Notes under the pieces: generated by a model
What the model was told of the DNA's origin: nothing
Databases searched by the model: none
The model's input: only the letters and a program-made list of their open reading frames with translations
In this document: piece after piece, positions 27,001 through 59,116 of the stretch
Layout of the letters: each line of letters opens with the position of its first letter
How positions within the stretch are numbered: position 1 is the first letter of the stretch
Program-made: the position numbers and the translations under genes
Source of the DNA: Rebecca billardiae RCC1528
Lineage: Eukaryota > Protista > Haptophyta
Assembly: GCA_965240325.2 (NCBI GenBank)
Contig: OZ251236.1
Location: 434,001-498,000, forward strand
Direction of reading: 5' to 3'
Length of the DNA stretch: 64,000 nucleotides

Positions 27001-28331
27001 GGTGGCGGCGACGGCGGCGGCAAGGGAGGCGGCATCGGCGGTGGGGGCGAGGGCGGAGGCGACGGCGGAGGCGACGGCGGCGGCGACGGTGGCGGTGATG
27101 GCGGAGGCGACGGCGGAGGCGACGGCGGCGGGCTGGGTGGCGGCGAGGGCGGCGGCACGGGAGGCAGCATCGGCGGTGGGGGCGATGGCGGAGGCGACGG
27201 CGGCGGCGATGGTGGCGGTGATGGCGGAGGCGACGGCGGAGGCGACGGCGGCGGGCTGGGTGGCGGCGAGGGCGGCGGCGAGGGAGGCGGCATCGGCGGT
27301 GGGGGCGACGGCGGGGGCGACGGCGGAGGCGACGGTGGCGGCGATGGTGGGGGCGACGGCGGGGGCGACGGCGGCGGGCTCGGCGGCGGTGGGGACGGCG
27401 GTGGGGATGGTGGCGGCGACGGCGGCGGGCTGGGTGGCGGGCTCGGCGGCGGCGACGGCGGCGGTGACGGCGGCGGACTCGGTGGCGGCGACGGCGGCGG
27501 CAAGGGAGGCGGCATCGGCGGTGGGGGCGACGGCGGAGGTGACGGCGGCGGCGATGGTGGCGGGCTCGGTGGCGGCGACGGCGGCGGTGACGGCGGCGGA
27601 CTCGGTGGCGGCGAGGGCGGCGGCGAGGGAGGCGGCATCGGCGGTGGGGGCGACGGCGGAGGCGACGGCGGCGGCGACGGTGGCGGTGATGGCGGAGGCG
27701 ACGGCGGAGGCGACGGCGGCGGGCTCGGCGGCGGTGGCGACGGCGGTGGGGATGGCGGCGGCGACGGCGGCGGCGACGGCGGCGGCGAGGGCGGCAGCGT
27801 TGGCGGTGGGGGTGATGGCGGCGGCGACGGCGGCGGCGGCGGCGACGGAGGCGGCGATGGCGGCGATGGCGGTGGCGAGGGCGGCGGGGGTGACGGTGGG
27901 GGCGACGGCGGCGGTGGGGATGGTGGCGGGTTTGGCGGGGGCAATGGCGGTGGCGTGGGAGGCGGCGGGCTGGGCGGCGGGCTGGGCGGCGGGCTGGGCG
28001 GCGGGCTGGGCGCCTCCTGCAAGCCGCGCCGAGGTGCGGCCGCTGTGGGCGCTGCGCGTCCAGGCCCATCGGCCGGCTCTGGGCGTGTGCGCGCTGCGCC
28101 CATACTCGCACCGGGCGCAAGGCCTGAGCTCGGCCCGCCATGGCCAGCCCATCCCACCGGAGCAGCTGTGGCGCGGGGCCGCTTGAGGTGCGCGGCGCTC
28201 TCAGCGCCGCGCGCCCAGGGCAATATCGAGCGTGCGTGCGGCGCGTGGACGAGGGTGCCGTGCAGCGCTATGACAAGCACGAGCGCCGCGTGCATCGGGG
28301 CGTACACGGGGCGGACGCGCTGCGCCCGCAT
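1..28331 (-). CDS. Giant polycystin-1/REJ-GPS-like cell-surface receptor with extensin-like Ser-Pro rods (>=~9,400 aa; 3' end runs off the window). Exon 1 28331-1569, exon 2 1423-<1
   Basis: Manual translation of the minus frame (codon first base = 2 mod 3) stays in register at 28331, 26879, 17159, 15839, 6599, 4499, 1979 and 1619; no stop found at the candidate positions checked. N-terminus MRAQRVRPVYAPMHAALVLVIALHGTLVHA (signal peptide; alternative ATG 28295), then SPPP blocks, Cys repeats, IPT, REJ and GPS. After the intron: TMs MFYVVLALVLCHLLFLLLAFLV, FVQLVFNLLALQLVLQCLFF and VPILVAGVLSALIAWPALLFFRLVW. Confidence 0.9.
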   Translation of the reverse strand, partial: MRAQRVRPVYAPMHAALVLVIALHGTLVHAPHARSILPWARGAESAAHLKRPRATAAPVGWAGHGGPSSGLAPGASMGAARTRPEPADGPGRAAPTAAAPRRGLQEAPSPPPSPPPSPPPSPPPPTPPPLPPPNPPPSPPPPSPPPSPPPPSPPPSPPSPPPSPPPPPSPPPSPPPPTLPPSPPPSPPPSPPPSPPPSPPPPSPPPSPPPSPPPSPPPSPPPSPPPSPPPPMPPPSPPPSPPPSPPPSPPPSPPPSPPPSPPPSPPPSPPPPMPPPLPPPSPPPSPPPSPPPSPPPSPPPSPPPSPPPSPPPSPPPPSPPPSPPPSPPPSPPPSPPPSPPPSPPPPMPPPSPPPSPPPSPPPSPPPSPPPSPPPSPPPSPPPSPPPPMLPPVPPPSPPPSPPPSPPPSPPPSPPPSPPPSPPPSPPPSPPPPMPPPLPPPSPPPSPPPSPPPSPPPSPPPSPPPSPPPSPPPSPPPPSPPPSPPPSPPPLPPPSPPPSPQPSPPPSSPPSPPPSPPPPMPPPSPPPSPPPSPPPSPPPSPPPSPPPVSPAPPPSPPPNPPPSPPPSPPPSPPPPTPPPLPPPSPPPSPPPSPPPSPPPPSPPPSPPPSPPPPVPPPSPPPSPPPSSPPSPPPAAASPPPSPPPSPPPTPPPSPPPSPPPPSPPPSPPPSPPPTPPPSPPPSPPPSPPPSPPPSPPPSPPPPLPPPSPPPSPPPSPPPSPPPDSPSPPPSPPPSPPPSPPPSPPPSPPPPSPSPSPPPSPPPSLPPSPPPSPPPSPPPSPPPSPPPSPPPSPPPPSSPPSPPPSPPPSPPPSPPPSPPPSPPPPSPPPSPPPSPPPSPPPSPPPSAPPSPPPSPPPSPPPSPPPSPPPSPPPSPPPSPPPSPPPPSPPPSPPPNTPPSPPPSPPPSPPPSPPPPIPPPSPPPSPPPSPPPTAPQPPPSPPPSPLASPPPPSPSPPPPSPSPPPSPPSPPPSPPPSPPPSPPPSPPPSPPPSPPPPIPPPSPPPSPPPSPPPSPPPSRPPSPPPSPPPSPPPSPPPSPPPSPPPSPPPSPPPSPPPPSPPPSPPPNPPPSPPPSPPPSPPPSPPPPIPPPSPPPSPPPSPPPTAPQPPPSPPPSPLASPPPPSPSPPPPSPSPPPSPPSPPPSPPPSPPPSPPPSPPPSPPPSPPPPIPPPSPPPSPPPSPPPSPPPSRPPSPPPSPPPSPPPSPPPSPPPSPPPSPPPSPPPSPPPPSPPPSPPPNPPPSPPPWPPPSPPPSPPPPIPPPSPPPSPPPSPPPTAPQPPPSPPPSPLASPPPPSPSPPPPSPSPPPSPPSPPPSPPPSPPPSPPPSPPPSPPPSPPPPIPPPSPPPSPPPSPPPSPPPSRPPSPPPSPPPSPPPSPPPSPPPSPPPSPPPSPPPSPPPPSPPPSPPPNPPPSPPPSPPPSPPPSPPPPIPPPSPPPSPPPSPPPTAPQPPPSPPPSPLASPPPPSPSPPPPSPSPPPSPPSPPPSPPPSPPPSPPPSPPPSPPPSPPPPSLPPSPPPSPPPSPPPSPPPSAPPSPPPSPPPSRPPSPPPSPPPSPPPSPPPSPPPSPPPPSPPPSPPPSPPPSPPPSPPPSPPPSPPPPIPPPSPPPSPPPSPPPTAPQPPPSPPPSPLASPPPPSPSPPPPSPSPPPSPPSPPPSPPPSPPPSPPPSPPPSPPPSPPPPSLPPSPPPSPPPSPPPSPPPSRPPSPPPSPPPSPPPSPPPSPPPSPPLSPPPSPPPSPPPPSPPPSPPPDPPPSPPPSPPPSPPPSPPPPIPPPSPPPSPPPSPPPTAPQPPPSPPPSPLASPPPPSPSPPPPSPSPPPSPPSPPPSPPPSPPPSPPPSPPPSPPPSPPPPSLPPSPPPSPPPSPPPSPPPSAPPSPPPSPPPSPPPSPPPSPPPSPPPSPPPSPPPSLPPPSPPPSPPPSPPPSPPPTPPPSPPPSPPPPIPPPSPPPLPPPSPPPTAPQPPPSPPPSPLASPPPPSPSPPPPSPSPPPSPPSPPPSPPPSPPPSPPPSPPPSPPPSPPPPSLPPSPPPSPPPSPPPSPPPSRPPSPPPSPPPSPPPSPPPSPPPSPPPSPPPSPPPSPPPPSPPPSPPPNPPPSPPPSPPPSPPPSPPPPIPPPSPPPSPPPSPPPTAPQPPPSPPPSPLASPPPPSPSPPPPSPSPPPSPPSPPPSPPPSPPPSPPPSPPPSPPPSPPPPSPPPSPPPSPPPSPPPSPPPSAPPSPPPSPPPSPPPSPPPSPPPSPPPSPPPSPPPSPPPPSPPPSPPPNPPPSPPPSPPPSPPPSPPPPIPPPSPPPSPPPSPPPTAPQPPPSPPPSPLASPPPPSPSPPPPSPSPPPSPPSPPPSPPPSPPPSPPPSPPPSPPPSPPPPSPPPSPPPSPPPSPPPSPPPSAPPSPPPSPPPSPPPSPPPSPPPSPPPSPPPSPPPSPPPPSPPPSPPPSPPPSPPPTPPPSPPPSPPPPIPPPSPPPSPPPSPPPTAPQPPPSPPPSPLASPPPPSPSPPPPSPSPPPSPPSPPPSPPPSPPPSPPPSPPPSPPPSPPPPSPPPSPPPSPPPSPPPSPPPSAPPSPPPSPPPSPPPSPPPSPPPSPPPSPPPSPPPSPPPPSPPPSPPPSPPPSPPPTPPPSPPPSPPPPIPPPSPPPSPPPSPPPTAPQPPPSPPPSPLASPPPPSPSPPPPSPSPPPSPPSPPPSPPPSPPPSPPPSPPPSPPPSPPPPSPPPSPPPSPPPSPPPSPPPSAPPTPPPSPPPSRPPSPPPSPPPSPPPSPPPSPPPSPPPPSPPPSPPPSPPPSPPPSPPPSPPPSPPPPIPPPSPPPSPPPSPPPTAPQPPPSPPPSPLASPPPPSPSPPPPSPSPPPSPPSPPPSPPPSPPPSPPPSPPPSPPPSPPPPSPPPSPPPSPPPSPPPSPPPSAPPSPPPSPPPSPPPSPPPSPPPSPPPSPPPSPPPSPPPPSPPPSPPPSPPPSPPPTPPPSPPPSPPPPIPPPSPPPSPPPSPPPTAPQPPPSPPPSPLASPPPPSPSPPPPSPSPPPSPPSPPPSPPPSPPPWPPPSPPPSPPPSPPPPSPPPSPPPSPPPSPPPSPPPSAPPTPPPSPPPSRPPSPPPSPPPSPPPSPPPSPPPSPPPPSPPPSPPPSPPPSPPPTPPPSPPPSPPPPIPPPSPPPSPPPSPPPTAPQPPPSPPPSPLASPPPPSPSPPPPSPSPPPSPPSPPPSPPPSPPPSPPPSPPPSPPPSPPPSPPPPSLPPSPPPSPPPSPPPSPPPSAPPSPPPSPPPSPPPSPPPSPPPSPPPSPPPSPPPSPPPPSPPPSPPPSPPPSPPPTPPPSPPPSPPPPIPPPSPPPSPPPSPPPTAPQPPPSPPPSPLASPPPPSPSPPPPSPSPPPSPPSPPPSPPPSPPPSPPPSPPPSPPPSPPPPSPPPSPPPSPPPSPPPSPPPSAPPSPPPSPPPSPPPSPPPSPPPSPPPSPPPSPPPSPPPPSPPPSPPPNPPPSPPPSPPPSPPPSPPPPIPPPIPPPSPPPSPPPTTQQPPPSPPPSPPPSPPPPSPPPPPPPSPPPTPPPSPPPPSPPPPPPPSPPPSPPSPSPPPSPPPSPPPSPPPSPPPLRPPSPPPSRPPPSSPPSPPPAPPPSPPPSPPPSPPPPLPSPPPSPLPLPPPSPPPSPPPMAPTPPPNPPPSPPPSPPPSPPPPSPPPSPPPPSRPPPLPPPSPPPSPPPPLPPPSPPPPSPPPSPPPPSPPPSPPPPAPPPSPPPPNFGCTDPVSLSYDSLATVLDPAPGTCVYAVRGCTAPRASNYNSRADVDNGKCTFPVFGCMATGALNYNSTATRQSACVFPVLGCTDSTALNFRAAANVDDGSCIAAVSGCMATRATNYDSSANVDDGSCVYPVRGCTDSTALNYRSAATADDGGCIVPVGGCLLTDALNYDSVATHQTWFSCLMPVLGCTDSSAYNYREAATLDDGGCIAKPGRRRLLSARHGRRLAAGCTVPSAANYDSAADSDDGSCVFSVQGCTDSTAENYDSGADTDDGTCEYAGCTDSTASNFDSTADVLDVTCEYTDVDGCANSLAENYLSSATVDDGTCVLRGCTSSSAANYDSSATDDDGSCQQEELGCTDSAASNYVSAATADDGGCVHFGCTNATATNFDSTANTDDGSCVEPTLGCADTLASNYDSSVTDDDGSCRYPGCQDSTAKNFWSTANFPDGLCEYYSPPPSPPSPPPSPPPSPPPSPPPSPPPSPPPSPPPSPPPSPPPPVPPPSPPPSPPPSPPPSPPPGPPPSPPPSPPPSPPPSPPPGPPPSPPPNPPPSPPPPLPPPSPPPSPPPPSPPPSPPPSPPSPPPSPPPSPPPSPPPAPPPPPRTLPFPPPSPPSPPPSPPPSPPPSPPPSPPPSPPPSPPPSPPPSPPPSPPPSPPPSPPPSSPPSPPPSPPPSPPPSPPPSPPPSPPPSPPPSSPPSPPPSPPPSPPPSPPPSPPPSPPPSPPPPVPPPSPPPSPPPSPPPAPPPSPPPSPPPSPPPSPPPSPPPPSPPPSPPPAPPPSPPPSPPPSPPPSPPPPSPPPSPPPSPPPSPPPSPPPSPPPSPPPPASAPAPPPSPPPSPPPSPPPAPPPSPPPSPPPSPPPPSTPPSPPPSPPPPAPPPSPPPSPPPPSPPPSPPPSPPPPSPPPSPPPSPPPPSPPPSPPPSPPPPSPPPSPPPAPPPSPPPSPPPAPPPSPPPPSPPPSPPPSPPPPSPPPSPPPSPPPSPPPSPPPSPPPSPPPPSPPPSPPPSPPPPSPPPSPPPSPPPPSPPPSPPPSPPPSPPPSPPPRPPPPPRVQPFPPPSPPAPPPSPPPSPPPAPPPSPPPSPPPSPPPSPPPPWPPPSPPPSPPPPSPPPSPPPSPPPPSPPPSPPPSPPPPSPPPSPPPSPPPPSPPPSPPPAPPPSPPPSPPPSPPPSPPPPSPPPSPPPSPPPPSPPPSPPPSPPPPSPPPSPPPSPPPSPPPSPPPPSPPPIPPPSPPPSPPPPSPPPSPPPSPPPPSPPPSPPPSPPPPSPPPSPPPGPPPSPPPSPPPSPPPSPPPPSPPPSPPPSPPPPSPPPSPPPSPPPPSPPPSPPPSPPPPSPPPLPPPVPPPSPPPSPPPSPPPSPPPPTPPPSPPPSPPPPATGPLPPPSPPPSPPPNPPPSPPPPSPPPSPPPSPPPPSPPPSPPPSPPPPSPPPSPPPSPPPPSPPPSPPPSPPPPSPPPSPPPSPPPSLPPTPPPSPPPSPPPPSPPPSPPPSPPPPSPPPSPPPSPPPPLPPPSPPPSPPPPSPPPLPPPSPPPPSPPPSPPPSPPPPSPPPSPPPAPPPSPPPSPPPLPPPPPRMLPFPPPSPPAPPPSPPPSPPPSPPPSPPPSPPPSPPPSPPPPSPPPSPPPSPPPPSPPPSPPPSPPPPSPPPSPPPSPPPPSPPPSPPPSPPPRPPPRPPPSPPPSPPPPAPPPSPPPSPPPPSPPPSPPPSPPPPSPPPSPPPSPPPPSPPPSPPPSPPPPSPPPSPPPSPPPPSPPPAPPPSPPPPTPPPSPPPSPPPPATAPVPPPSPPPSPPPAPPPSPPPPSPPPSPPPSPPPPSPPPTPPPSPPPPSPPPRPPPSPPPPSPPPSPPPSPPPPSPPPSPPPSPPPSPPPSPPPSPPPSPPPPSPPPSPPPSPPPPSPPPSPPPSPPPPSPPPSPPPSPPPPSPPPSPPPSPPPPSPPPYPPPAPPPSPPPSPPPLPPPPPRMLPFPPPSPPAPPPSPPPSPPPSPPPSPPPSPPPSPPPSPPPPSPPPSPPPSPPPPSPPPSPPPSPPPPSPPPSPPPSPPPPSPPPSPPPSPPPRPPPRPPPSPPPSPPPPAPPPSPPPSPPPPSPPPSPPPSPPPPSPPPSPPPSPPPPSPPPSPPPSPPPPSPPPSPPPSPPPPSPPPAPPPSPPPPTPPPSPPPSPPPPATAPVPPPSPPPSPPPAPPPSPPPPSPPPSPPPSPPPPSPPPTPPPSPPPPSPPPRPPPSPPPPSPPPSPPPSPPPPSPPPSPPPSPPPSPPPSPPPSPPPSPPPPSPPPSPPPSPPPPSPPPSPPPSPPPPSPPPSPPPSPPPPSPPPSPPPSPPPPSPPPSPPPSPPPPSPPPSPPPAPPPSPPPSPPPLPPPPPRMLPFPPPSPPAPPPSPPPSPPPSPPPSPPPSPPPSPPPSPPPPSPPPSPPPSPPPPSPPPSPPPSPPPPSPPPSPPPSPPPPSPPPSPPPSPPPPSPPPSPPPSPPPPSPPPSPPPSPPPPSPPPSPPPSLPPSPPPRPPPSPPPSPPPPSPPPSPPPSPPPPSPPPSPPPSPPPPSPPPSPPPSPPPPSPPPSPPPSPPPPSPPPSPPPSPPPPSPPPSPPPAPPPSPPPSPPPLPPPPPRMLPFPPPSPPAPPPSPPPSPPPSPPPSPPPSPPPSPPPSPPPPSPPPSPPPSPPPPSPPPSPPPSPPPPSPPPSPPPSPPPPSPPPSPPPSPPPPSPPPAPPPSPPPPTPPPSPPPSPPPPATAPLPPPSPPPAPPPSPPPPSPPPSPPPSPPPPSPPPLPPPSPPPPSPPPSPPPSPPPPSPPPSPPPSPPPPSPPPLPPPSPPPPSPPPSPPPSPPPPSPPPLPPPSPPPPSPPPSPPPSPPPPSPPPSPPPTPPPSPPPSPPPLPPPPPRMLPFPPPSPPAPPPSPPPSPPPSPPPSPPPSPPPSPPPSPPPRPPPSPPPSPPPSPPPPSPPPSPPPSPPPPSPPPSPPPSPPPPSPPPSPPPSPPPPSPPPSPPPSPPPPSPPPSPPPSPPPSPPPSPPPSPPPSPPPPSPPPSPPPSPPPPSPPPSPPPSPPPPSPPPSPPPSPPPPSPPPSPPPSPPPPSPPPSPPPSPPPPSPPPSPPPSPPPPSPPPSPPPSPPPPTPPPSPPPSSPPPATAPLPPPSPPPSPPPARPPSPPPSPPPSPPPALPPSPPPSPPPSPPPLPPPSPPPSPPPRPPPSPPPSPPPSPPPSPPPSPPPSPPPSPPPSPPPSPPPSPPPSPPPRPPPSPPPSPPPSPPPSPPPSPPPSPPPSPPPSPPPSPPPSPPPSPPPSPPPSPPPSPPPSPPPSPPPSPPPSPPPSPPPSPPPSPPPSPPPSPPPSPPPSPPPSPPPSPPPSPPPSPPPSPPPSPPPSPPPSPPPSPPPSPPPSPPPSPPPSPPPSPPPSPPPSPPPSPPPSPPPSPPPSPPPSPPPSPPPSPPPSPPPSPPPSPPPSPPPSPPPSPPPSPPPSPPPSPPPSPPPSPPPSPPPSPPPSPPPSPPPSPPPSPPPSPPPSPPPSPPPRPPPFPPPSPPPSPPPTPPPSPPPSPPPLPPPPPRTEPFPPPAPPSPPLPALALISITSFAPLGAALGRPTNLTLNGTGFLPAAHHAAGMSCELAPRDVVADPVVGSVTAVTATSLVCEIAASAAPTVLSDDVRVRVLAPAGQEPASADAPAPLVFYDADAQRPAAVSPAGAPAGLESPPQLVRVRAPPELVAAEGGYVDYGGLRCEFGVFGTVEATLTGSADALLCSAPRVSPSALTAADGSGAQVAVEVSLNGQAYSTGGADGGAPFVFYSAVVEAAEPSGAPAGAPLPVTLSGSGFVDLGAGVASCTFNSTAAGGGGGAHVVRANVTGTGEAVCAALPASASVGAYSVSLALDGATPLEPLFDAPTFSLYNSSGLRVIAISPPGGPVAGGAVVTLVGAGFAAYGGDALCCVLLRRWPAGSAADDAAEAALDAGGAPCAAPATLLPPRASDGSTRARCTLPAASAVGALNGSAQAVANLSLAAFSASLELSLNAGAPRSLTRARLPFALYAPPAVTSVAPPSGLASGGDRVVVRGSGFTALAHTLARARDDGGAGAVGTGEDATDSPGLDPADVRAAAAAVLRVRLGDSSQPALSARAVNDTAIALTTAWGREGVAPVLVSLNGRQYSAADDAARGGTGASFDFIGIHAPEVISATFADDASDLRIVLDGQPTDRAGMIGLQPCAAALDDATVARIQGSFGTPPNCFWQDDSTLIAELNYLTDLRPGDTVALRPGAIGPAALPAGSCPGHELCSNSTAVIDEDAPCGEGGCPTPVAAISAVAELSLCAGETLRLDGSASSGGGIVPLTYSWRVDASRSDGAAALRAALLGQTSAVVSLSSALPTSGTMVFLLRVTSFLGATSAATRWTVTRGSGASPAVDVDGPFLRAARPDVATVLLARAALAECWPSALSGEVAFAWQIESAVRTSSGAALADPTAPLDALPAGSAAQPSLLLPAGALSAGASYTFAVRASMAALPSASAVARVRVAVSELAPRALIAGGDRTLSEASALRLDGSASVDADGDTAGLAAYAWAAARLNATSGAEIAASLGSLGATGGSSALLDVGAGALSGGATYRFTLTVTASTGASGAASVDVSVLSANVPTLSIEPLARAKYNPTWTLPSARVAIVGSVDAASALLQAQGLAAYNYAWRARAVSAAGALVDAGLDLSADLTDTTTGDAQPNLAFRSGALAAGTLYAFELTVRGGDAPATAEVRVQMNRPPFGGALVASPAAGVAAVTLFSLSAPGWADDPEDLPLRYTFGYEGGSGSREPLTEALAATSATAFLPSGARLATVAVADVHAGVAAGSAAVDVADAAAADLETLLARAEAAVALGDTDKAQQLLHALALVSAPDPAATAANRRALALNGSSGFLNGTAADCAPFNATVGARMVELAGLAIGASANTEPNRAQAARTLAAIVGAGVDVLAGQTQADVLTLLAVLLSGALAEGSDDATASGALGTLSTVLGANASAVGEALSRTIGERAALGASRLGLSFLAGGVTGEVSRDALGAHVQLRATRLTQAATENGTLGGPAGSGVALALPPGSLDAAAAAVSGGLSAGVDIVIYATLRNLYAPPGLGGPFANESTGLGDGVVETALVAVELADGASGSALGVSNLSTAARIALPPADPATPASAWTCVFWDEDELAWSTDGCEARTDAATGERACVCDHLTTFAGLRFAESPGVPEVRARAPRHAAPTPGQAGRRARANACAHARARAPSLRACARSPPARARAGVCGGGGGGVSRARSRRRRRRLGRRRRQPRRPPPLAHVLRRPRACAVPSSLSAAGVFGGPSAGAAGGGGGGEGGGDGAVAHAGGGARPAARARAEPVAPALAAALAAAARAGAAGTARCAARRRRPLARRRRRAELRAARRPLAAGAALGGGVRVRARARAAPHRVRPARLQPPRAAARAAVPLLPRRRPRLQSRGRARADGRDGGGGGDGRAVRGAGGVGAGRRADPRRGGPQRAHRVARPPLLPPRLGRLTAAPTLLRGPAGGGAAQYCVRPLRRRAGPLLVRRAGRVRAGRGAAERRRVRRRRALGRAPAQLWRRRQPAQLRGLGRRRRVALPARAVARGLARRGAGGAGARGGRGAGAARGIARRGGRRARRARGRDSGNAVHAAARARECRRAAAAARAAAAARAAAARAAAGGRRRGRAGRGAAAALHHGRARLRLLLRPRPHRSRLDRRHRPPRAPHKTVLCFAARV
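1424..1568 (-). other. Spliceosomal intron (145 nt) between the GPS motif and TM1 of the giant gene
   Basis: Donor GAG|GTGCGC at 1568, acceptor CGCAG|GAG at 1424, (GC)n-rich interior. Splicing shifts the frame into the TM-encoding exon (EFAEEVEAASRGRARDDDD...). Confidence 0.8.
1599..1718 (-). other. GPS (GAIN-domain autoproteolysis) motif
   Basis: CVFWDEDELAWSTDGCEARTDAATGERACVCDHL|TTFAGL matches the C-x-F-W...W...GC...C-x-C-x-H-L-T-x-F consensus. Confidence 0.92.
2740..4330 (-). other. REJ domain region of the giant protein (boundaries approximate)
   Basis: LRLDGSASxDxD, YxW and LxxGxxYxFxLxV modules, plus NRPPFGGALVASPAAGVAAVTLFSLSAPGWADDPEDLPLRYTFGY, typical of the REJ C-terminal part. 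Confidence 0.85.
5110..6500 (-). other. About four tandem IPT/TIG-like Ig domains (boundaries approximate)
   Basis: ITSFAPLGAALGRPTNLTLNGTGF; VEVSLNGQAYS..PFVFY; AEPSGAPAGAPLPVTLSGSGF; VIAISPPGGPVAGGAVVTLVGAGF. Confidence 0.75.
6505..15804 (-). repeat. Ser-Pro3/Pro4 extensin-like block B (~3,100 codons) with higher-order 0.7-1.2 kb duplications
   Basis: Continuous SPPP/SPPPP coding. Anchor motif R-[MTV]-[LEQ]-P-F-P recurs near 6545, 8536, 9355, 10081, 11281, 12442, 14005 and 15350; 10081-11280 and 11281-12441 are near-copies. Confidence 0.9.
15810..17159 (-). repeat. 17 Cys-rich GC(T/M)DxxAxN(Y/F)xxxAxxDDGSC repeats
   Basis: Translated units such as GCTDSTALNYRSAATADDGGC and GCTDSTAENYDSGADTDDGTC; 8 units, then RRRLLSARHGRRLA, then 9 units. 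Confidence 0.9.
17162..28010 (-). repeat. Ser-Pro extensin-like block A (~3,600 codons) containing a 513-bp (171-aa) tandem array, 15 full units at ~18185-25891
   Basis: Anchor gacgccagaggcgaa and the + strand shadow ORF starts recur every 513 bp (one 525-bp unit); units are near-identical. Confidence 0.93.
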
Positions 28332-29579: not shown

Positions 29580-30013
29580 TCATGCCGAGGAGGCGTCCGA
29601 GAGCCGAGCAAGCGACTTTGCGCGGTCCATCAGCGGCCGCGGCTTCTTGAACGCGGGCTTGGACGCGATCGCCGCGGCCAGCGAGCCGCGCCGCCCGGAC
29701 GCGCAGCTGCTCGTCGACGCGCGGCGCGTCGAGCCGCTTTGCTCGACGCTGTCGCCGCCCGCGCCCGCCTCGACGTCGGCCGGCGGACCGCGCGCGCGCC
29801 ACGCGCCGCGCGCCCCATCCTCGCCCTTCTGCACGATCGCGGTGAATGCGTGGAAGATGACGGGGTTGAACGTGTCGAGGGGGCCGTAGCCCTGCTCGAT
29901 CATCGCGAGGAGGCGCGACTTGTCGTCGGCGAGCGCGCACTTGCAATCGCGCACGTCGAAGTTGCGCACGCGCTCGAGCCAGACATCGTGCCGCGTGGAC
30001 GCGCGCGAGAGCT

Positions 30014-30048
<35 letters not shown>

Positions 30049-31575
30049 TCGCCCATGTCGAAGAGGTGGGTGAGGGAGATGCGGTCGACGGTGCCGCCCA
30101 TCTCGAGGTAGGTGAACACCTCGAGCACGCTGCGCCGAGGGGGCGGCGGCCGCGTGCGCGGCGTGCGCGTGTCAGCGCGCGCGCGCGGAGGCGGCGCCGA
30201 GCGGCGGGGCGTGTCGCGCGCGCTCATCGCTCGCGCGCTCGGCACGGCGGGCGCGCACGGCGCGCGTGCTCGCGCGCACCACCACAAGCGGTCGAGGTAC
30301 GTCTCGCCGACGAAGGCGAGCAGCCCCTCGCACCCGGCGAGGAAGACGGGCAGGCACGAGAGCGTCTCCTCGATGTGCGTCCGGCTCTCCTGCGAGATGC
30401 ACGCCTTGTCCAGCCAGACGACAGGCTCTCGCCCGTGTGAGGCGACAAAGCCTGCGCGCCACGCCTGCAGCGCGCGCCACTTGGCGTCCGCGTCGTCGTG
30501 CCAGCTGCGCGCGCAAGGGCGGGGGGCGCACGGTGTCGGCGGAGGGCCGGCGCGCACGCCGCGCACGCCGCGCACGCCGCGCACGCCGCGCGCACGAGTG
30601 AGTGACGAAGGCGTCCACCTCTCCGAACGCGCGCGGCAGCGAGCGCTCGTGCAGCGCGGGGTCGGGCGCCGGGTTGGTCAGGTCGGCCTTGCTCAGCCGG
30701 TCGAGCGGGAGGCCGCGGAAGAGGCGGCGCGCGCGCTCCTGGATGGTCTCGGGGTCGTCGCCACCGAGCAGCGAGGCGATGCACAGCGCGGCGGACATCG
30801 CCTCCCCGCGCGCCGCCACGTACGCCTGCGCGCGCACGCGCACCGACGGGTAGAGGGCAAGAGCACCCGCGAGGCACTCGAGTGCGCTGCCGCCGTGCGC
30901 GGCGTAGTAGGCGGCAGCGGGCGGCGCGACGCCGACGCCGAGCTCGATCGCGCGCGTGATCGTCTCCGACGCGCCGTCGAGCATGAACGCCAGGCCGAGC
31001 GCGTTCCACAGCGCGTCGAGCTGCGCGCGCGGTGTGCGCAGCCGCGCGAGCGTCGCCGAGAGCCGGAGGGCGAGCACGAGCGCGCTCAGCGCCTGCGCGA
31101 GCCGGCACGACCAGTGCAGGAGCAGCAGCCAGCAGGGGGGCGCGCCGGCGGGCGCGTCGGCCGAGCACGCCGCCGGGCGCATCGCCTCGAGCCGCGCGAA
31201 GAGCAGCCCGAACGTCGCCGTGACGCCGAGCGCGGCAAACGTGACGACCATCACGCCGTAGCACACGAGCGCCGCGTCCATCGGCGTGAGGGCGAGGAGC
31301 AGGAGCATCGCGCCGGGGGCGAGGCCGTAGTGCATCGCAGACACGCCCATGGGGAGGCGCATCGCGAGCGCGATGCCCGCGCCGGTGGAGAGCACCACCA
31401 GCGTCGCGCCCGCCGCCGCGAGCGGGAGCTGCACGCGCCGCCGGAAGTTGAGGCCGCACGCGTGCGCGCCGTCGAGCTTCTCGCGGATGCTCAACGCGCG
31501 CTTCGCGAGGGTCTGCGCGTCCGCGGGCTCGTCCTTCGACGTGCGCCGCCACGGCAAGACGTGGGGCGCAAGCAT
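29580..31575 (-). CDS. 6-TM membrane protein with cytosolic TIR-like domain (~584 aa; introns 30505-30595 and 30130-30279)
   Basis: Spliced product DAFVTHSWHDDADAKW...VWLDKACISQ...LPVFLAGCEGLLAFVGETYLDRLWCVLEVF. Both introns are GTGCG...GCAG and their removal restores the HSW and WCVLE motifs; six hydrophobic segments upstream. Start codon is the most plausible ATG. Confidence 0.82.
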
Positions 31576-31943
31576 GGCGCCGAGCGCGAGCACCTTGCTC
31601 GGCGGCCGAGCAGCTGCTTCAAGCTGCCCTGCCCACCTCTGCACCTCTACCCATCAAGCCCGCCTGGCCGGGCGCGCGCCTGCCCACCCGTTCGTACTCT
31701 CGACTCGATCGGCGTCTCGTCGTCGTCAGAATCCAATAGAGGGTGGGTATTGCTGGCCGCCTGGCCACTTCGTGGCTATGGTATCAATCAATCATCATGA
31801 TGAGGCCGCCGCCGTTCATCAGCGCTCATATCATATTATTATGAGCCCGCTCCGGGCTGGTATCTGAACCCGCGCCTGGGTAAACATTGTTCGCGGACAC
31901 GCACGGGGCTCCAATTCAGCGCAGCGCCCCAGCCCACCGCAGC

Positions 31944-53440: not shown

Positions 53441-53812
53441 TCGGCAAGGCCACCAGGCCGCGCACACCGGCCCGGGCGACCACATCCACTACCTGCACTA
53501 CGGCATCAACTTGAACAGCCTCGGACGACGACGACACGGGCAACTACATGATGACCAAGGCCGACGACGACTGCAAAACAGCGGCATCCCCGGGCGCCTA
53601 CTACCTCAGTGACCGTGTGATCAGCATCGGTTACGACGACTCCCTCACCCGCGGCCAACGCGCTCCGACATCCTCCATTAACTCCATTCAGTACTTCGAC
53701 AGACGAATCAGGAGAGCTGCGCCCTCGTGCCTGTGTCTTTAAATCATAGAATTGGTCTATCTCACGGAACGGCCCGACATTGGTCGCCGCGTCAAGTGGC
53801 AAGGCCAAGGGC

Positions 53813-56800
53813 TTAGGGCGCGCCGCCCGCCCGCGGCCGCTCTGGGTCTGGCGCCACCGTCGCGCCGCGCTCGCACACATACGCGAAGGCGTAGGCAAAG
53901 TCGAAGTCGCAGCGCTCGTCAAACCAGCCGCCGACGCCGATGCGCGCGCAGTTCTCGCCGTGGTCGCGCGCGCCCAGCGCCCCGAGCGGCGTTGTCGCCC
54001 CGTGGTCGGGCATGCCCGCCGCCCAGTTCACGTGCGACGCGCCGCCCTCGCCGAGCGCGCGCCCGTCCTCCCACCGCCAGCCCGCGCTCGGCTGGGCGCT
54101 GCCGCTGGGCTGGCTGAGGCCGATCCACACGCCGAGCGCGTAGTCGCCGATCAGGCAGCGCACCGTCGCCTCCTCGCGCGCCGAGCCGAGCGAGACCAGG
54201 CGCGCGCCCTCCGCGGCGCACGCCTGGCGCGCGCCCGCGAACGACGTCGGCTCCTCGCCGAGCCGCCGACCTCGCCGCCCGCTGAACCGGTACTGCCGGC
54301 CGTCGCGCGTCGTCCAGCCGCGCGCGTCCGTGGGCAGCCCGCCCAGCAGCTGCGCGCACGCCGCGCAGTCGGCGTCGGCGGGCACGGCGATGATCCAGCC
54401 GGCGGCGAAGAGGATGAGCACGCCGGCCACGATCGCACCCGCGGCGCGGCGCGCACGGCGGGTCCGGTGCAGGAGGGCGCCGCGGGCGGCCGCGCCGCCG
54501 TCGGCCGCCGGCGCGCGCGCCGAGGGGCTGCTCGGACTCAGCGCGTGCGCGGCGCCGTCGGGCGCGGCGGCGCCTCTCGCCGCCGGCGGCGTGGCCGCGC
54601 CGTGGCCTGCGCCCCACTCCACGTCGACGCCTGCGCGCCCGGCCGCGGCGTCGTCGCCGCCGCGCGCCGGGCTGGGCGTCACCGCCGCGTAGCCCATGCC
54701 CCGCACGCCGCCGCCGCCGGGCGGCTTGAGCCCGGCGCCCTCCGCCGACGGCCGCCACGCGCGCTTGGGCAGCTTGGCCCTGAGCGGCGAGGGCGAGGCC
54801 ACGACGCCCGCGCTGCCCGTGCTCTCGCACGCGCGGAGGCTCGGCGGCGCGGCAGCGCCCGACTCGCGCCTCGACACGCTCTGCATGTGCGCGCGCACGA
54901 GCAGCTGGCGTGCGCTCTCGTTGAAGCTCTCGAGCGAGCCGCACGCCGCCTCAATACACGCGAGCAGCCGGTCCTCGTCCTCCCGCTTCGCGCAGCGCGA
55001 CGCCTGCACCGCAAACGCCGAGAAGGCGGCGGCGTCCCCGCCCGGCAGCATGATCATCTCCACGCTCCCCTCGCGCGTCGAGCCGACCGAGGGCGCGCGG
55101 GCCGAGCCGACCGAGCGCTCCAGCTCGGGCTGGCGGGCGGCGCCGGCGGCGGCGGCGCTGGCATGCGAGCCGCTGGACGAGCGCGAGCCGAGGGTCCGCG
55201 CGCTCCAGCCGCGCTTCGCCGCGCACGCCGCCGCCGCGCCCGCACCCGGCGGCGGCGGCGGCCAGCCCGCCGCGCCGCGCCGGCGCGTGTGCGCGCGGTG
55301 CATCTGCTCGAACACGAAGAGCTCCGTCACGCACCAGAGCCTCTCGAGGTACGTGGGGCCTGCGAGGATGAGCAGCTTCTTGCACCCCGCGAGGTACACG
55401 GGCAGGAAGGGCAGGTCGGCGGACACGTCCTGCTGGTCGATGCACGCGCGGTCAAACCACAGCCGCGGCTCGCGCCCGCTGTGCTCGCGCCGGAACTGCG
55501 CGCACCACGCGAGCAGCGCGGAGTACTTCGGGCCGGCCGGGTCGTGCCACTGCGGGCGCGCGGCGCGCGGCGCGAGCGGGCGGCGCGCGCGCGCGCGGGC
55601 GGGCGGGCGGCTCAGCGCGCGGCGCCCCGCGCCCCGCCAGCCCCCAGCCCCACCTGCCCCCGCGCCCGCACCCGACCTCGACCTCGACCTCGCGCGGCCG
55701 CGCGGCCGCGCGGCCGCACCGAGTGGCTGACAAACGCGTCGACGCTGTCGAGGTCGGCCGAGAGCGAGCGGCGGTACCAGTCGTTGTTGCCGGGCTGGTT
55801 CTGGGCGAAGAGGCTCGCGTCGAGCCGGTCGGCCGGGATCGCGCGCATGCGCGAGCGCCCGCGCGCGATGGCCTCCTCCGCGCTGATGCCGCCGATCAGC
55901 GACGCGACGCCCGCCGCGGCCGACACGCCCTCGCCCCTCGCCGCCAGGATGGCGTGCACGCGCGAGCGCACGGCCGGCGTGAGCGCGAGCGCCGTGCACA
56001 GCGCGAAGTTGGCGCAGATGGAGAGCTCGGCCCAGAAGTTGCTGCTCCGGTGGTACGGCGGGAACGCCACGCCCAGGTACACGAACCAGTACGCCATCAG
56101 CAGCCCGAAGATGGCGTTCACGCGCCCGATGGCGAGCCACAGACTCTCGAGCAGCGAGCGCGTCGTGAGCCGGCGCGCGCGCAGGCCGAGGCAGCGCTGC
56201 GCGAGCCGCGTGGAGCTCGAGAGCACGGCGTGCCAGACGAACGCCACCGTGCCGAGCGCCGTGCCCGCCAGCGCGAGCAGCACGAGCACGAGCGTGCGCG
56301 CCTGCACGCGCGAGATGCACTCCGCCGCCCACACGCTCGACGCGGCGATCGGCACGGCGACGTAGCTCGCGGCGCCCGCGAAGAGGGAGAGGCCGCCGGT
56401 CCAGAAGATGCCGAACGCACGCACGAGGAACGCGTCGGTCGGGCGCAGCGCCATCAGGAGGAAGGGCACGGCGATGACGCCCATGTGGAAGCCGAGCCAG
56501 AAGAGCGGCGTGCCCCACGTGTTCGACACAAACAGCGCGAGGCCGACGGAGCAGAAGGCGCAGCCGAGCATGAAGGGCGGGCCGGACACGCGCATGCGGT
56601 AGCCCTTGCCCGCGGCCTGCGCCTCGAGCAGCGCGCTGCGCAGCTCGGCGGCCTGCGCGCCGCTGTGCGCGAGCGTCGGCGTCGAATGGGAGCAAGCGCG
56701 GATCTGCGGCTCGGTGCTGTCAGGTGCCACCCGCTCGAGCGCCAGCGGCCTCGGCGACGAGGCTACCGCCTGTGATGATGGGCCATGCGCCGCGCAGGCC

Positions 56801-56814
56801 GACGCAGAGGGCAT
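53813..56814 (-). CDS. 6-TM + TIR-like domain + TM + C-type lectin domain protein (~943 aa; intron 55550-55719)
   Basis: Six TM segments; DAFVSHS|WHDPAGPKY..LWFDRACIDQ..LPVYLAGCKKLLILAGPTYLERLWCVTELF; TM AAGAIVAGVLILFAAGWIIAV; CTLD SFAGARQACAAEGARLVSL..VWIGL..WRWEDG..NWAAGMPD..ENC..WFDERC..YVCE. Confidence 0.87.
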
Positions 56815-57700
56815 GCTCGTGGGCCCGACCTTCTTTACTTTGCGTCGTCGTGAGTCGCAGAGTCCCCTTTGATCGAAAACGCGCGTACAGATTGTCGTCG
56901 TGGGTGAGTCTCCTCGTAATCTTGATACCGCCACCAAAGGAATCATCCAAGAGAAGCCGTTCGTAACGACGTTATTGTCGAAGATGTTGGACGAGATTTT
57001 TACTACAGGCTGAGATACGGTACCGGCACCATCAATAAAAGATGAGCGATACTCAATCAAGGGCCCTTGACTCTCAATGAACAGGGGCCGGCGTTGCGCC
57101 AAGCTGGACAACGCCTTCCGGTGTTTTCAGATCATTCTATACATACGCTTTTAAAAAAAAGAAATGTTCCGCGCTCTGTCCGACTGTCCCGCGGCAAAGC
57201 GCGGCGGATGGCGGCTTGGCCGCGGCATGGGCAGGCGAGTCGCCGCTGCCCGCAGAAAACGTGCGTCAGAGGCAAGGAAGCGGGCAGATGGCGCGTCGCA
57301 CGCGTCGTGGAATTCGGTCGCGACGCTCGCCAGCCTCAGCGCGCGCGGCAAAGCCACGTCCATGGGCGCCCAGCGTGCAGGCGGCATGGCCACGCCGCTC
57401 GGCCGCGGCGACCGCTCTCGCACGCGTCCTTGCGGCGCGAAAGGGCATCCCAGCTGCGGTCATTCGCCTTGTGCGTCGGGAGACGTGTGCCAGCTAGCCA
57501 ATGCACACCGCGCGGCCGGGCGTGCGCCGAAAGCGGCACAGCGAGAGAGGGCCCCGATCCGAGTGCAGGTCTCGCCGGGGCCCTCCACAAGTCCAAGGAT
57601 CCTGGGTCTCGGGTCCTTCGCGTTTGTCCAGCTGGCGCAACGCTCCGAATACCCTCATCACCTGCTTCTCACCAGGCGACGGGAGGCACCGCGTCTGGCG

Positions 57701-58459: not shown

Positions 58460-59116
58460 CTACTGCGGCGCGGACGAGGCCGCGCCGAACTCGTCGCGGT
58501 ACGCGCGCACCGCAGCGAGATGCGCGGCGCTGTCCGGCCGCGACTCGAGCAGCTCGACGAGCGCAGAGAGCGTCGCGAGCGAGACGACGCGTACGCCGTA
58601 CTCGCGCTCGACCTCCTGGATAGCGGAGGTGCCGCCCGCCTGGCCACGTTCTTGTCGGTCGAGCGAGACGACCACGGACGTGAACGTCGCTCCGGCTGCC
58701 TTGATGATGCCGACGGCCTCGCGAATCGCCGTGCCGGCGGTGATGACGTCGTCGATCACGAGCACGCGGCCGGCGAGGGGCGCACCGACGACGACGCCGC
58801 CCTCGCCGTGGTCCTTGGCCTCCTTGCGATTGTAGCACCACGCCACGTCGCGCCCGTGGTGCGTCGCCAACGCCGCCGCCGTCGCTGTCACGAGCGGGAT
58901 CCCCTTGTACGCCGGGCCGAAGAGCACGTCAAACTCGATGCCCGAGGCGACGATGGCGGCGGCGTAATGGCGGCCGAGCTCGGCGATGGCGGAGCCGGTG
59001 TTGAAGAGGCCGGCGTTGAAGAAGTACGGGGACGAACGCCCGCTCTTCAGCGTGAACTGCCCGAACTTCAGCACGTCGCGCGCGATGCAGAACTCGAGGA
59101 AGTCCTTCGACGCCAT
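58460..59116 (-). CDS. pyrE: Orotate phosphoribosyltransferase (monofunctional)
   Basis: [68 protein letters not shown]. Confidence 0.97.

Follow-up and report, generated by a model that had tools for sequence, protein, structure and literature searches.

Several groups of described proteins come closest to the locus reported here. In Toll-like receptors (TLRs), an extracellular binding domain is linked across the membrane to a cytosolic TIR-superfamily domain, in the order N-terminal leucine-rich repeats (LRRs), one transmembrane (TM) helix and C-terminal TIR, and clustering is presumed. In the type II C-type lectin receptors of animals (Dectin-1, DC-SIGN, CLEC10A), the N-terminal part lies in the cytosol and signals, and a TM helix connects it to an extracellular C-type lectin-like domain (CTLD) at the C-terminus. 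Their cytosolic motifs are short and ITAM-like or serve internalisation, and their CTLDs carry the canonical EPN or QPD together with WND. Fungal HET proteins (PF06985) are soluble, either stand-alone or with the HET domain N-terminal on NLRs, and the HET consensus blocks are YxALSYxWG, WIDxxCINQ and RxWTxQE. Finally, the variable proteins of cyanobacterial diversity-generating retroelements (DGRs) combine a TIR-like signalling domain with a C-terminal binding domain of C-type-lectin fold (PMC7517822), and a bacterial cluster of the ESM Atlas named 'Lectin C-type/TIR domain-containing protein' may have a similar combination, a weak lead with a score of 0.68. HET homologs in the Haptophyceae, and a remote homology between HET and TIR, were reported in 2014 (PMC4986451). 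The gene described here, from the haptophyte Rebecca billardiae RCC1528, is predicted to encode six TM helices, an internal TIR/HET-like domain, a seventh helix and an external CTLD in one protein, and because of this combination it looks like a surface receptor.

The window (the whole stretch of 64,000 nucleotides that was analysed) has a G+C content of 0.744. At 75-80% GC the length of an open reading frame is weak evidence, because an 861-aa ORF also lies antisense to the gene (plus strand, 53780-56365; rejected as an artefact of GC composition), and codon-position GC rather than ORF length was taken as the deciding test of coding status. The sequence points to a single functional two-exon gene on the minus strand (CDS 56814-55720 plus 55549-53816), predicted to encode a multi-pass membrane protein of 943 aa, since the third-position GC (GC3) periodicity is unbroken, the splice site is canonical and the intron position is common to a paralog. 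Exon 1 (55720..56814, 365 aa), delimited with the ORF and ATG list, GC3 and the homolog contig L002, encodes a disordered N-terminus and six TM helices, followed by an amphipathic segment in the cytosol and, with ..DAFVSHS, the first strand of the TIR/HET-like domain, while exon 2 (53813..55549, 578 aa plus the stop codon at 53813-53815), delimited by translation and GC3, encodes the remainder of that domain, a linker, the seventh TM helix (TM7) and the CTLD. The two are separated by an intron of 170 nt (55550..55719, GTGCGG...CGCAG, with GT..AG borders), which splits FVSHS|W: the minus-strand ORF 55612..57111 has ...DAFVSHS at its end followed by GTGCGG, and in the minus-strand ORF 53813..56695 the residues WHDPAGPKY come directly after ...CGCAG.

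Removal of 55550-55719 yields a contiguous FVSHSW, and the corresponding F[VLI]SHSW is unbroken in the transcript-derived homologs P0005, P0006 and P0024; the paralog within the same 64-kb window has its intron at the identical SHS|W codon boundary. In the exon-2 frame GC3 is 0.92-1.00 without a break from 55573 to 53850, and in the exon-1 frame it is 0.96-1.00 from about 56700 to 55724; codon-position GC is flat in the intron, with no periodicity, and the overall GC drops to 0.5-0.6 beyond the limits of the gene. The one-intron model and single frame of the original prediction are thereby upheld. Translation likely starts at ATG 56814. The alternative ATG 56595, which aligns with the called start of P0129, is less likely because in contig L002 the open frame and the homology both continue upstream of the Met matching 56595, and because periodicity extends from about 56770 on the start side of exon 1, where GC3 climbs to 0.88-0.96.

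The six-helix domain (aa 79-282; 55969..56580, minus strand, as are all features below) is the conserved chassis of a protein family. Hydropathy and an AlphaFold model (m90125330d95a, pLDDT 84) agree on its six helices, across which the pLDDT of the model exceeds 90. A fold search of this domain against the PDB found no relative, and no channel-like or transporter-like structural match; the PDB entries returned were generic helical bundles, designed proteins and GPCRs (E>=0.09, TM<=0.28), which we regard as meaningless, and the AFDB matches were family members only. Downstream of the TIR/HET-like domain lies a low-complexity linker rich in Ala, Gly, Pro and Arg (aa 581-726; 54467..54904), read from the translation with an in-frame GC3 of 0.92-1.00 and predicted to be cytosolic, which ends in RTRRARR ahead of TM7 (AIVAGVLILFAAGWIIAV; 54383..54436). 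TM7 reaches a hydropathy peak of 2.52 and is homologous to the TM helix of P0129 and of other tails. The ectodomain that follows is Cys-rich, with six Cys. The distribution of Lys and Arg, 22 on the predicted cytosolic side versus 2 outside, puts the TIR/HET-like domain in the cytosol and the CTLD outside. The topology foreseen from the letters alone, with six plus one helices, the TIR-like domain inside and the lectin outside, thus agrees with hydropathy, the AlphaFold model, the charge distribution, the RTRRARR stretch and the Cys-rich ectodomain.

The TIR/HET-like domain (aa ~355-580; 54905..55752, intron included) contains FVSHSW, WFDRACIDQ and RLWCVTE (55322-55342). It is interrupted in the aC-bD loop by a low-complexity insertion of about 78 aa (55067..55300; alignment A1; GC3 0.96-0.98), and P0129, encoded by an intronless, transcript-like contig, has a similar insertion at the same site; for this reason two weak candidates for an in-frame intron inside the insertion, of 54 and 69 nt, were dropped. 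Structural evidence comes from an AlphaFold model of residues 362-540 of P0005 (pLDDT 92.1, pTM 0.85), a homolog of about 45% identity modelled in place of the window's own spliced domain from an alignment of 66 sequences that includes the window's piece. Its matches in the PDB are almost exclusively TIR domains, with enzymatic plant TIRs at the top, and the TIRs of MyD88, TLRs and SIGIRR rank among the best by both structure and sequence; a PDB profile search returned five weak matches, four of them TIRs. The model argues for a TIR-superfamily fold in the middle domain, and a TIR-like domain was indeed what had been proposed.

The further label of a TIR domain proper fits the fold and not the Pfam definition. 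Pfam TIR, TIR_2 and HET gave no match to the window's own pieces, in which the domain is split by the intron. Among the 66 aligned relatives, 37 match TIR_2 (PF13676; best E 2.6e-6, with individual relatives at 13-16 bits, below the gathering cutoff of 28 bits), nine match TIR (PF01582), and 43 weakly match HET (best E 9.4e-4), the last confined to the WxDxxCIxQ block and in no relative reaching the gathering threshold of 22.5 bits; the family's Pfam matches lie mostly under the gathering scores. Judged by its sequence, the domain is placed between HET and TIR_2 and is not a canonical Pfam TIR. Its three motifs resemble the fungal HET blocks (F-x-S-H-S-W and YxALSYxWG, W-x-D-x-x-C-I-D-Q and WIDxxCINQ, R-L-W-C-x-x-E and RxWTxQE), whereas fungal HET proteins have neither the six-helix domain nor a CTLD fusion. 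With the enzymatic TIRs (plant TNL and TIR-only proteins such as RUN1 and RPP1; SARM1; bacterial AbTir, ThsB and SPARTA) it shares the fold, the WCxxE-type Glu at the start of helix aC and a Ser-containing bA motif, but identity is only about 12-17%, the algal domain has two extra C-terminal helices, and its WxDxxCIDQ block is absent from canonical TIRs.

Glu441 of RLWCVTE (55322..55324) stands where TIR NADases have their catalytic Glu. It corresponds to E89 of alignment A2, which is invariant in 66/66 sequences, as are W15, D17, W44, D46, R83, W85 and C86, and in the P0005 model the equivalent residue follows strand bC directly, within the N-terminal portion of helix aC; in a weak HMMER alignment (E 0.5), RLWCvvE is paired with SSWCLDE of AtTIR 3jrn. 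Motif and model together suggest that a Glu stands at the WCxxE catalytic position, as originally predicted and at exactly the coordinates given; the equivalence is one of motif and secondary-structure position. NADase activity is here something we infer, since the biochemistry of HET domains is still undetermined and enzyme activity of the HET type is not demonstrated (PMC12881547). An algal TIR has been found to make 3'cADPR in a Glu-dependent manner (bioRxiv 10.64898/2026.04.20.719644).

The extracellular part comprises an ADCxxC motif and the CTLD (53867..54373), delimited by Pfam Lectin_C, PDB matches and alignment A4. Lectin_C (PF00059) matches 53870-54250 with E 1.8e-9 and 38.7 bits against a cutoff of 22.6, spanning profile positions 2-106 of 107, and the PDB sequence matches are CTLDs of the mannose-receptor family (PLA2R, DEC-205, MRC2), down to E 7.8e-14; there is also sequence similarity to CLEC10A, DC-SIGN and Dectin-1. 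With the WIGL (54116-54127) and ENC (53948-53956) motifs and all four canonical Cys (C809, C899, C912, C924), the sequence indicates a true and, as had been claimed, complete C-type lectin-like domain. The pattern expected of a Ca2+-dependent carbohydrate-binding lectin, EPN or QPD plus WND, is by contrast incomplete: MPD (54005-54013) has M in place of E/Q and WFD (53918-53926) has F in place of N, so that two of the five ligands of Ca2+ site 2 are absent. The same site reads QPD/WHD in P0129 and EPN/WFG in P0049, the whole binding loop is absent in P0053, P0024 and L001, and the loop is strongly variable among paralogs. The proposal that the protein senses glycans is consequently not supported, because these ligands are missing and the site is not conserved in the closest relatives.

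Relatives were compared by a motif survey of 155 proteins and the family alignments A1, A2 and A3. By its six-helix N-terminal domain followed by F[VLI]SHSW, WxDxxCxxQ and RLWCxxE, the predicted protein belongs to an algal family of 6TM + TIR/HET proteins. This family is very large, with 5,798 cluster representatives (E<=1e-3), and is algal and protist in distribution; its core is the six-helix domain followed by the cytosolic HET-like TIR-superfamily domain. The present gene falls within a subfamily of the Pavlovales that has gained a linker, an additional TM helix and, at the C-terminus, an extracellular CTLD. Homologous TM + CTLD tails were found by phmmer on fetched proteins in P0129, P0049, P0001 and the clusters of P0024 and P0053, while a word-based search with TM7 + CTLD gave no match, probably from saturation of the candidates by low-complexity words. 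P0129 aligns across all modules at 39-43% identity. In a sister species, the JGI contig L003 is without four genomic introns of locus L005 and contains the entire ORF; this spliced transcript has the whole architecture. The MMETSP transcript P0024 likewise runs from TIR/HET through a TM helix to a CTLD. Other relatives differ in their ectodomains: P0036 has LRRs instead of a CTLD (LRR, TM, multi-TM, TIR/HET), and some AFDB relatives named as C-type lectin proteins have the TM domain in mid-protein. The architecture had been thought undescribed, and a search, partly loosely targeted, of the literature on CTLD + TIR and on algal HET/TIR found no paper describing it; the claim nevertheless holds only in part, given the Haptophyceae HET homologs and the HET-TIR link noted above, and relatives in UniProt and AFDB already bear automatic HET, TIR or C-type lectin names.

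We propose that the protein is a surface receptor whose ligand is bound outside by the CTLD, and probably not through the canonical Ca2+/sugar site. Ligand-driven clustering would bring the cytosolic TIR/HET-like domains together, and the site around their invariant Glu would then give rise to a signal or to the death of the cell; if they behave like enzymatic TIRs, the output may be NAD+ cleavage or a cyclic ADPR-type signal. The six-helix domain would anchor the TIR/HET-like domain at the membrane and probably aid oligomerisation, and the extra TM helix would bring the ectodomain to the outer side; in relatives whose LRR or CTLD is N-terminal, this problem of topology has presumably been solved at the opposite end. 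The protein may act at the plasma membrane or at an endomembrane. Taken as a whole, we give this receptor reading a slightly better than even chance. The description as a Toll-like-receptor analogue can be kept as a functional analogy, the logic of an outer binding domain and an inner TIR-superfamily domain being alike; unlike TLRs, the protein has no LRRs (although its relative P0036 does have them), spans the membrane with seven helices, and bears the TIR-like domain internally and the CTLD at the C-terminus, and the two architectures do not share a common descent. The topology is nearer to that of a type II C-type lectin receptor, yet those receptors have no TIR/HET domain on a six-helix anchor, and the algal sugar site is incomplete where theirs is canonical. 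The bacterial TIR-like proteins with a C-type-lectin fold are without the six-helix membrane chassis, and the DGR fold belongs to a different subfamily, diversified by retrohoming.

The domain might instead be a non-enzymatic interaction module, like the TIRs of animal TLRs and MyD88 or the first proposal for fungal HET, in a protein for self/non-self or mating-type recognition, cell-cell or cell-scale adhesion, or contact with prey or symbionts, with a CTLD that binds protein or matrix. The TIRs of MyD88, TLRs and SIGIRR among its best matches, the CTLD without a canonical sugar site and the strong variation of its binding loop between paralogs would all suit such a role, as would the part played in fungal allorecognition by HET domains of undetermined biochemistry (PMC12881547). 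However, the polar residues D17, D46, R83 and E89 do not vary across the 66 diverged sequences, a pattern more in keeping with a catalytic site than with a scaffold surface, the best structural matches are enzymatic plant TIRs, and algal TIRs can be active enzymes (bioRxiv 10.64898/2026.04.20.719644); we therefore consider a purely interacting domain unlikely, at about one chance in four.

Most of the top 150 relatives have no ectodomain; the core must therefore function in its absence, and the actual sensor or effector may be the six-helix domain. On that account it would form a channel, disrupt the membrane or do the true sensing. Its activity would be controlled by the TIR/HET-like domain, and the CTLD would serve as no more than an attachment to the cell covering or to a lumenal glycan (e.g. 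in the Golgi or a scale-forming compartment). That the core is the conserved unit, and its TM domain confidently folded, conserved and unlike any known family, speaks for this; the fold search gave nothing channel-like or transporter-like, however, and independent LRR or CTLD ectodomains at either end, each with a compensating TM helix, are the pattern expected of receptors, which leaves this account improbable. An artefact of the gene model, with the TIR/HET and TM7-CTLD parts as separate genes or alternative transcripts or with product-changing introns hidden in the linker, is highly improbable: the model of this locus does rest on genomic sequence and homologs, a query for sequencing runs (RNA for the whole gene, any kind for exon 2) having listed none, long ORFs arise by chance at such GC content and periodicity is weaker at 54673-54449 (GC1/GC2 ~0.86/0.80-0.86 vs GC3 0.92-0.94), but one and the same frame has the highest GC3 from end to end, the domains are separated by neither a GC trough nor a stop, homologs including the spliced and MMETSP transcripts have the same module order, no in-frame intron in the TIR insertion is plausible and one in the linker would still leave the domains joined.

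Extended beyond this gene, the receptor reading becomes tentative, and we hold the following to be possible rather than probable. A large class of transmembrane TIR/HET receptors, so far undescribed, may exist in marine algae (haptophytes, dinoflagellates and others), built on a common six-helix chassis, with interchangeable C-type lectin or LRR ectodomains at either end and one compensating TM helix each. This class would be an independent form of surface-to-TIR signalling, in which clustering leads to Glu-dependent NAD+ consumption or a nucleotide signal and possibly to infection-triggered cell death in bloom-forming phytoplankton.

In fungi the HET branch is known genetically and not biochemically. 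The family of the present locus counts thousands of diverged members among marine protists; in it the HET-like branch is firmly coupled to the membrane and, in sub-families, also to extracellular recognition modules of classic type. Should the receptor reading hold, the family would offer a concrete way into the question of how phytoplankton cells recognise viruses, bacteria, prey or kin at their surface and decide on death, would bear on bloom termination, and would provide soluble, expressible domains for settling whether HET-type domains are NADases; it would also represent a convergent assembly of TLR-like logic from different parts.

The DNA around the gene, from a Pavlovales-like haptophyte, has a GC content of 75-80% (0.744 for the whole window, on a par with the 0.74 of a Diacronema lutheri locus) and carries long ORFs in every frame, so that ORF length is no evidence of coding here; coding status was tested through GC by codon position in 150-nt windows. 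On the minus strand, an ORF with hydrophobic segments (55612..57111) ends in ...DLDSVDAFVSHS followed by GTGCGG, and a second ORF (53813..56695) takes up the reading after ...CGCAG with WHDPAGPKY..., its stop codon being at 53813-53815. Excision of a 170-nt GT..AG intron (55550-55719, minus strand) joins the two as FVSHS|W, and the resulting CDS (56814-55720 plus 55549-53816, minus strand) encodes 943 aa, with the Glu of RLWCVTE at 55322-55324; a position check on the sequence confirmed the coordinates first proposed, those of this Glu among them. The exon-1 frame displays a GC3 of 0.96-1.00 from about 56700 to 55724, and the exon-2 frame one of 0.92-1.00 in all of these windows between 55573 and about 53850, a stretch spanning the TIR-like part, the linker, the seventh transmembrane (TM) segment and the lectin domain. 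Codon-position GC is flat in the intron (0.84/0.94/0.90), and total GC falls to 0.5-0.65 past both gene ends. This pattern is that of a single intron with one unbroken coding region before it and one after it. A plus-strand ORF of 861 aa that overlaps the gene in antisense (53780-56365) was rejected as a composition artefact of the 75-80% GC, the GC3 periodicity being that of the minus-strand frames. Very long ORFs also cover both strands of a highly repetitive GC-rich stretch at 23153-28200 (a 1662-aa Arg/His-rich ORF on the minus strand, and Ala/Thr/Val-rich ORFs of 583-588 aa in other frames), which has the look of a repeat array, tandem or low-complexity. Beside the receptor-like gene, a 218-aa ORF (58460-59116, minus strand) with a phosphoribosyltransferase-like look (a 13-letter motif) is probably a housekeeping gene of the orotate-PRTase type.

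A query for public sequencing runs of this DNA listed none. Four indirect lines (GC3, the closest homolog, shared tails and sister-species transcripts) agree in pointing to a single gene from the TIR/HET-like domain to the C-type lectin domain (CTLD). The closest homolog, P0129 (833 aa), is encoded by an intronless 2,896-nt JGI contig with UTR-like ends and aligns over every module, with 39% identity in the six-helix domain, 42% in the TIR/HET domain (including an insertion in the same aC-bD loop), and 43% in the seventh TM segment (TM7) plus CTLD. Tails homologous to this last part of the window's protein (E 1e-11 to 4e-43) occur in at least five different members of the family, among them three loci of Pavlovales sp. 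CCMP2436. A JGI contig of that alga (L003) codes for P0053 (688 aa), which has all parts of the architecture; the contig is collinear with the genomic locus L005 minus four genomic segments of 80-372 nt, whose absence identifies the contig as a spliced mRNA. The MMETSP transcript P0024, from the same alga, covers everything from FVSHSW to the last part of the CTLD, TM helix included. Thus, the architecture is conserved and transcribed in relatives. At a further CCMP2436 locus (L001, MU631316.1; 7100-7657 of L001), the straight ORF ends in ...WGWGVADCAGTFPYFCQRE..., an ordinary CTLD C-terminus. The annotated protein P0001 is there spliced from ...ADCAG to a far-off exon; since the end of the uninterrupted ORF, ...ADCAGTFPYFCQREEEGRNPN and a stop, makes the CTLD complete and shows full identity with the P0024 tail, the 3' end of this public gene model is probably wrong.

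The middle domain pieces of the window have no Pfam match. With exon-2 residues 1-215 as the query, a search recovered several ORFs from transcriptomes as well as proteins from Pavlovales sp. CCMP2436 and from Symbiodinium natans, all of which have the multi-TM N-terminus of this gene and uninterrupted F[VL]SHSW, WxDxxCIDQ and RLWCxxE motifs. A seven-sequence profile, scored against 1.84 billion representatives, matched 5,798 proteins at E<=1e-3, of which 1,069 also pass E<=1e-30, mostly of about 450-600 aa with the domain C-terminal. Nine positions are invariant in an alignment of 66 sequences (W15, D17, K22, W44, D46, R83, W85, C86 and E89). The fold was modelled on P0005:362-540, a homolog known from a transcript, using an alignment that included the window's piece, rather than on the window's own spliced domain; this model (pLDDT 92.1, pTM 0.85) has the order bA, aA, bB, aB, bC, aC, bD, aD plus two C-terminal helices, with the invariant Glu at the start of aC. 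In a Foldseek search of the PDB its first 26 places were all taken by TIR domains (best E 7e-5), including those of RUN1, RPP1, RPS4, L6, SNC1, SPARTA, AbTir, ThsB and SARM1, which bears out the TIR-like domain of the original prediction. At the sequence level the PDB gave five weak profile matches, four of them TIRs. AtTIR aligns weakly, its SSWCLDE pairing with RLWCvvE. Weak Pfam matches among the 66 relatives were to HET (43), TIR_2 (37) and TIR (9). Based on these matches and the fold of the homolog model, we assign the middle domain to a HET-like branch of the TIR superfamily. According to Dyrka et al. 2014 (PMC4986451), HET homologs occur in Haptophyceae and HET is remotely related to TIR; HET biochemistry is given as not determined in reviews up to 2025 (PMC10197012, PMC12881547). 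A paralog within the window (29580-31644, minus strand) comprises the six TM segments and TIR/HET only; both TM7 and the CTLD are missing from it. Here too, an intron (about 30513-30594) separates SHS from W on the same codon boundary, and a second intron apparently lies within RLW|C, near an intron position of a Pavlovales CCMP2436 gene.

The C-terminal domain matches Pfam Lectin_C over nearly its full length (E 1.8e-9; 38.7 bits against a cutoff of 22.6), and its best PDB sequence matches are the CTLDs of PLA2R, DEC-205, MRC2, the mannose receptor, CLEC10A and DC-SIGN; by sequence it is, as first proposed, a bona fide CTLD. In Ca2+-dependent sugar-binding CTLDs, Ca2+ site 2 is held by five side chains, which EPN/QPD, WND and a Glu contribute. 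The window CTLD carries MPD and WFD at the EPN/QPD and WND positions, and therefore lacks two of these ligands. Its closest homolog, P0129, has a canonical QPD with WHD, the family member P0049 has EPN/WFG, and in P0053, P0024 and L001 the entire long-loop region is absent; the sugar-site triplet differs in each paralog or ortholog examined. Since the site is incomplete here and variable or deleted in relatives, the proposed glycan sensing is not supported. Invariant among the tails are the fold core (C1, C3, C4 and Trp residues) and ADCxxC just outside TM7; a scaffold that is conserved while its binding loop varies would be compatible with diversified ligand recognition.

By hydropathy, exon 1 contains six TM segments, and a seventh, strong one lies at aa 737-754. 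The AlphaFold model of exon 1, built on an alignment of 47 homologous N-termini, consists of six long helices (pLDDT 84, >90 over helices). On the side that carries the N-terminus, the post-TM6 segment and loops 2-3 and 4-5, Lys plus Arg number 22, versus 2 on the opposite side; RTRRARR stands ahead of TM7, and PADADCAAC and a six-Cys domain come after it. These features predict a cytosolic TIR-like domain and a lectin domain on the extracellular or lumenal side, in agreement with the polarity originally proposed. A fold search found no PDB relative of the six-helix domain, and its convincing matches in AlphaFold DB clusters were family members only, automatically named "Heterokaryon incompatibility domain-containing", "TIR domain-containing" or "C-type lectin domain-containing" protein. 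Two of the C-type lectin proteins have the membrane domain mid-protein (residues 224-561 of 798 and 268-750 of 1005), which in these models leaves room for a further domain before it. P0036 (901 aa, JGI contig), with N-terminal plant-type LRRs, one TM helix, a multi-helix domain and a TIR/HET-like domain, is an LRR-ectodomain version of the same chassis. As a recurring rule, each ectodomain comes with one extra TM helix, whichever end carries it, and a receptor whose TIR/HET output is cytosolic would require just that.

Both the domain family and its occurrence in haptophytes have been reported before (PMC4986451), and database entries with automatic names exist; what stands of the claimed novelty is the architecture, as our literature searches found no paper describing either the membrane-embedded 6TM-TIR/HET family or its receptor-like members with a CTLD or LRRs. 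Combinations of TIR-like domains with C-type-lectin folds exist in bacteria (PMC7517822). In the ESM Atlas, a Bacillota cluster goes by the automatic name 'Lectin C-type/TIR domain-containing protein' (51 proteins; weak feature match, 0.68; Lectin_C in 100%, TIR_2 in 98%), which may be an independent combination of CTLD and TIR.

The analysis shows the structure of the gene and its order of domains, the topology as predicted, a TIR fold with an invariant Glu, the CTLD and the size of the family. A mechanism can be proposed in which the CTLD would bind an extracellular ligand, clustering would switch on the TIR/HET domain, and its output, NAD+ cleavage or a nucleotide signal, would lead to cell death or defence. 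Two findings from elsewhere favour this possibility: an algal TIR produces 3'cADPR in a Glu-dependent manner (bioRxiv 10.64898/2026.04.20.719644), and HET suffices to induce death in fungi (PMC10197012). Alternatively, the protein could be a non-enzymatic adaptor or a factor in allorecognition or adhesion, its CTLD and TIR fold retained, or the six-helix domain could itself act as a channel or effector. A gene-model artefact, against which the concurring lines for a single gene stand, is now unlikely. As a putative receptor with TIR/HET output, the protein would be relevant to the fields of TIR evolution and phytoplankton cell death.
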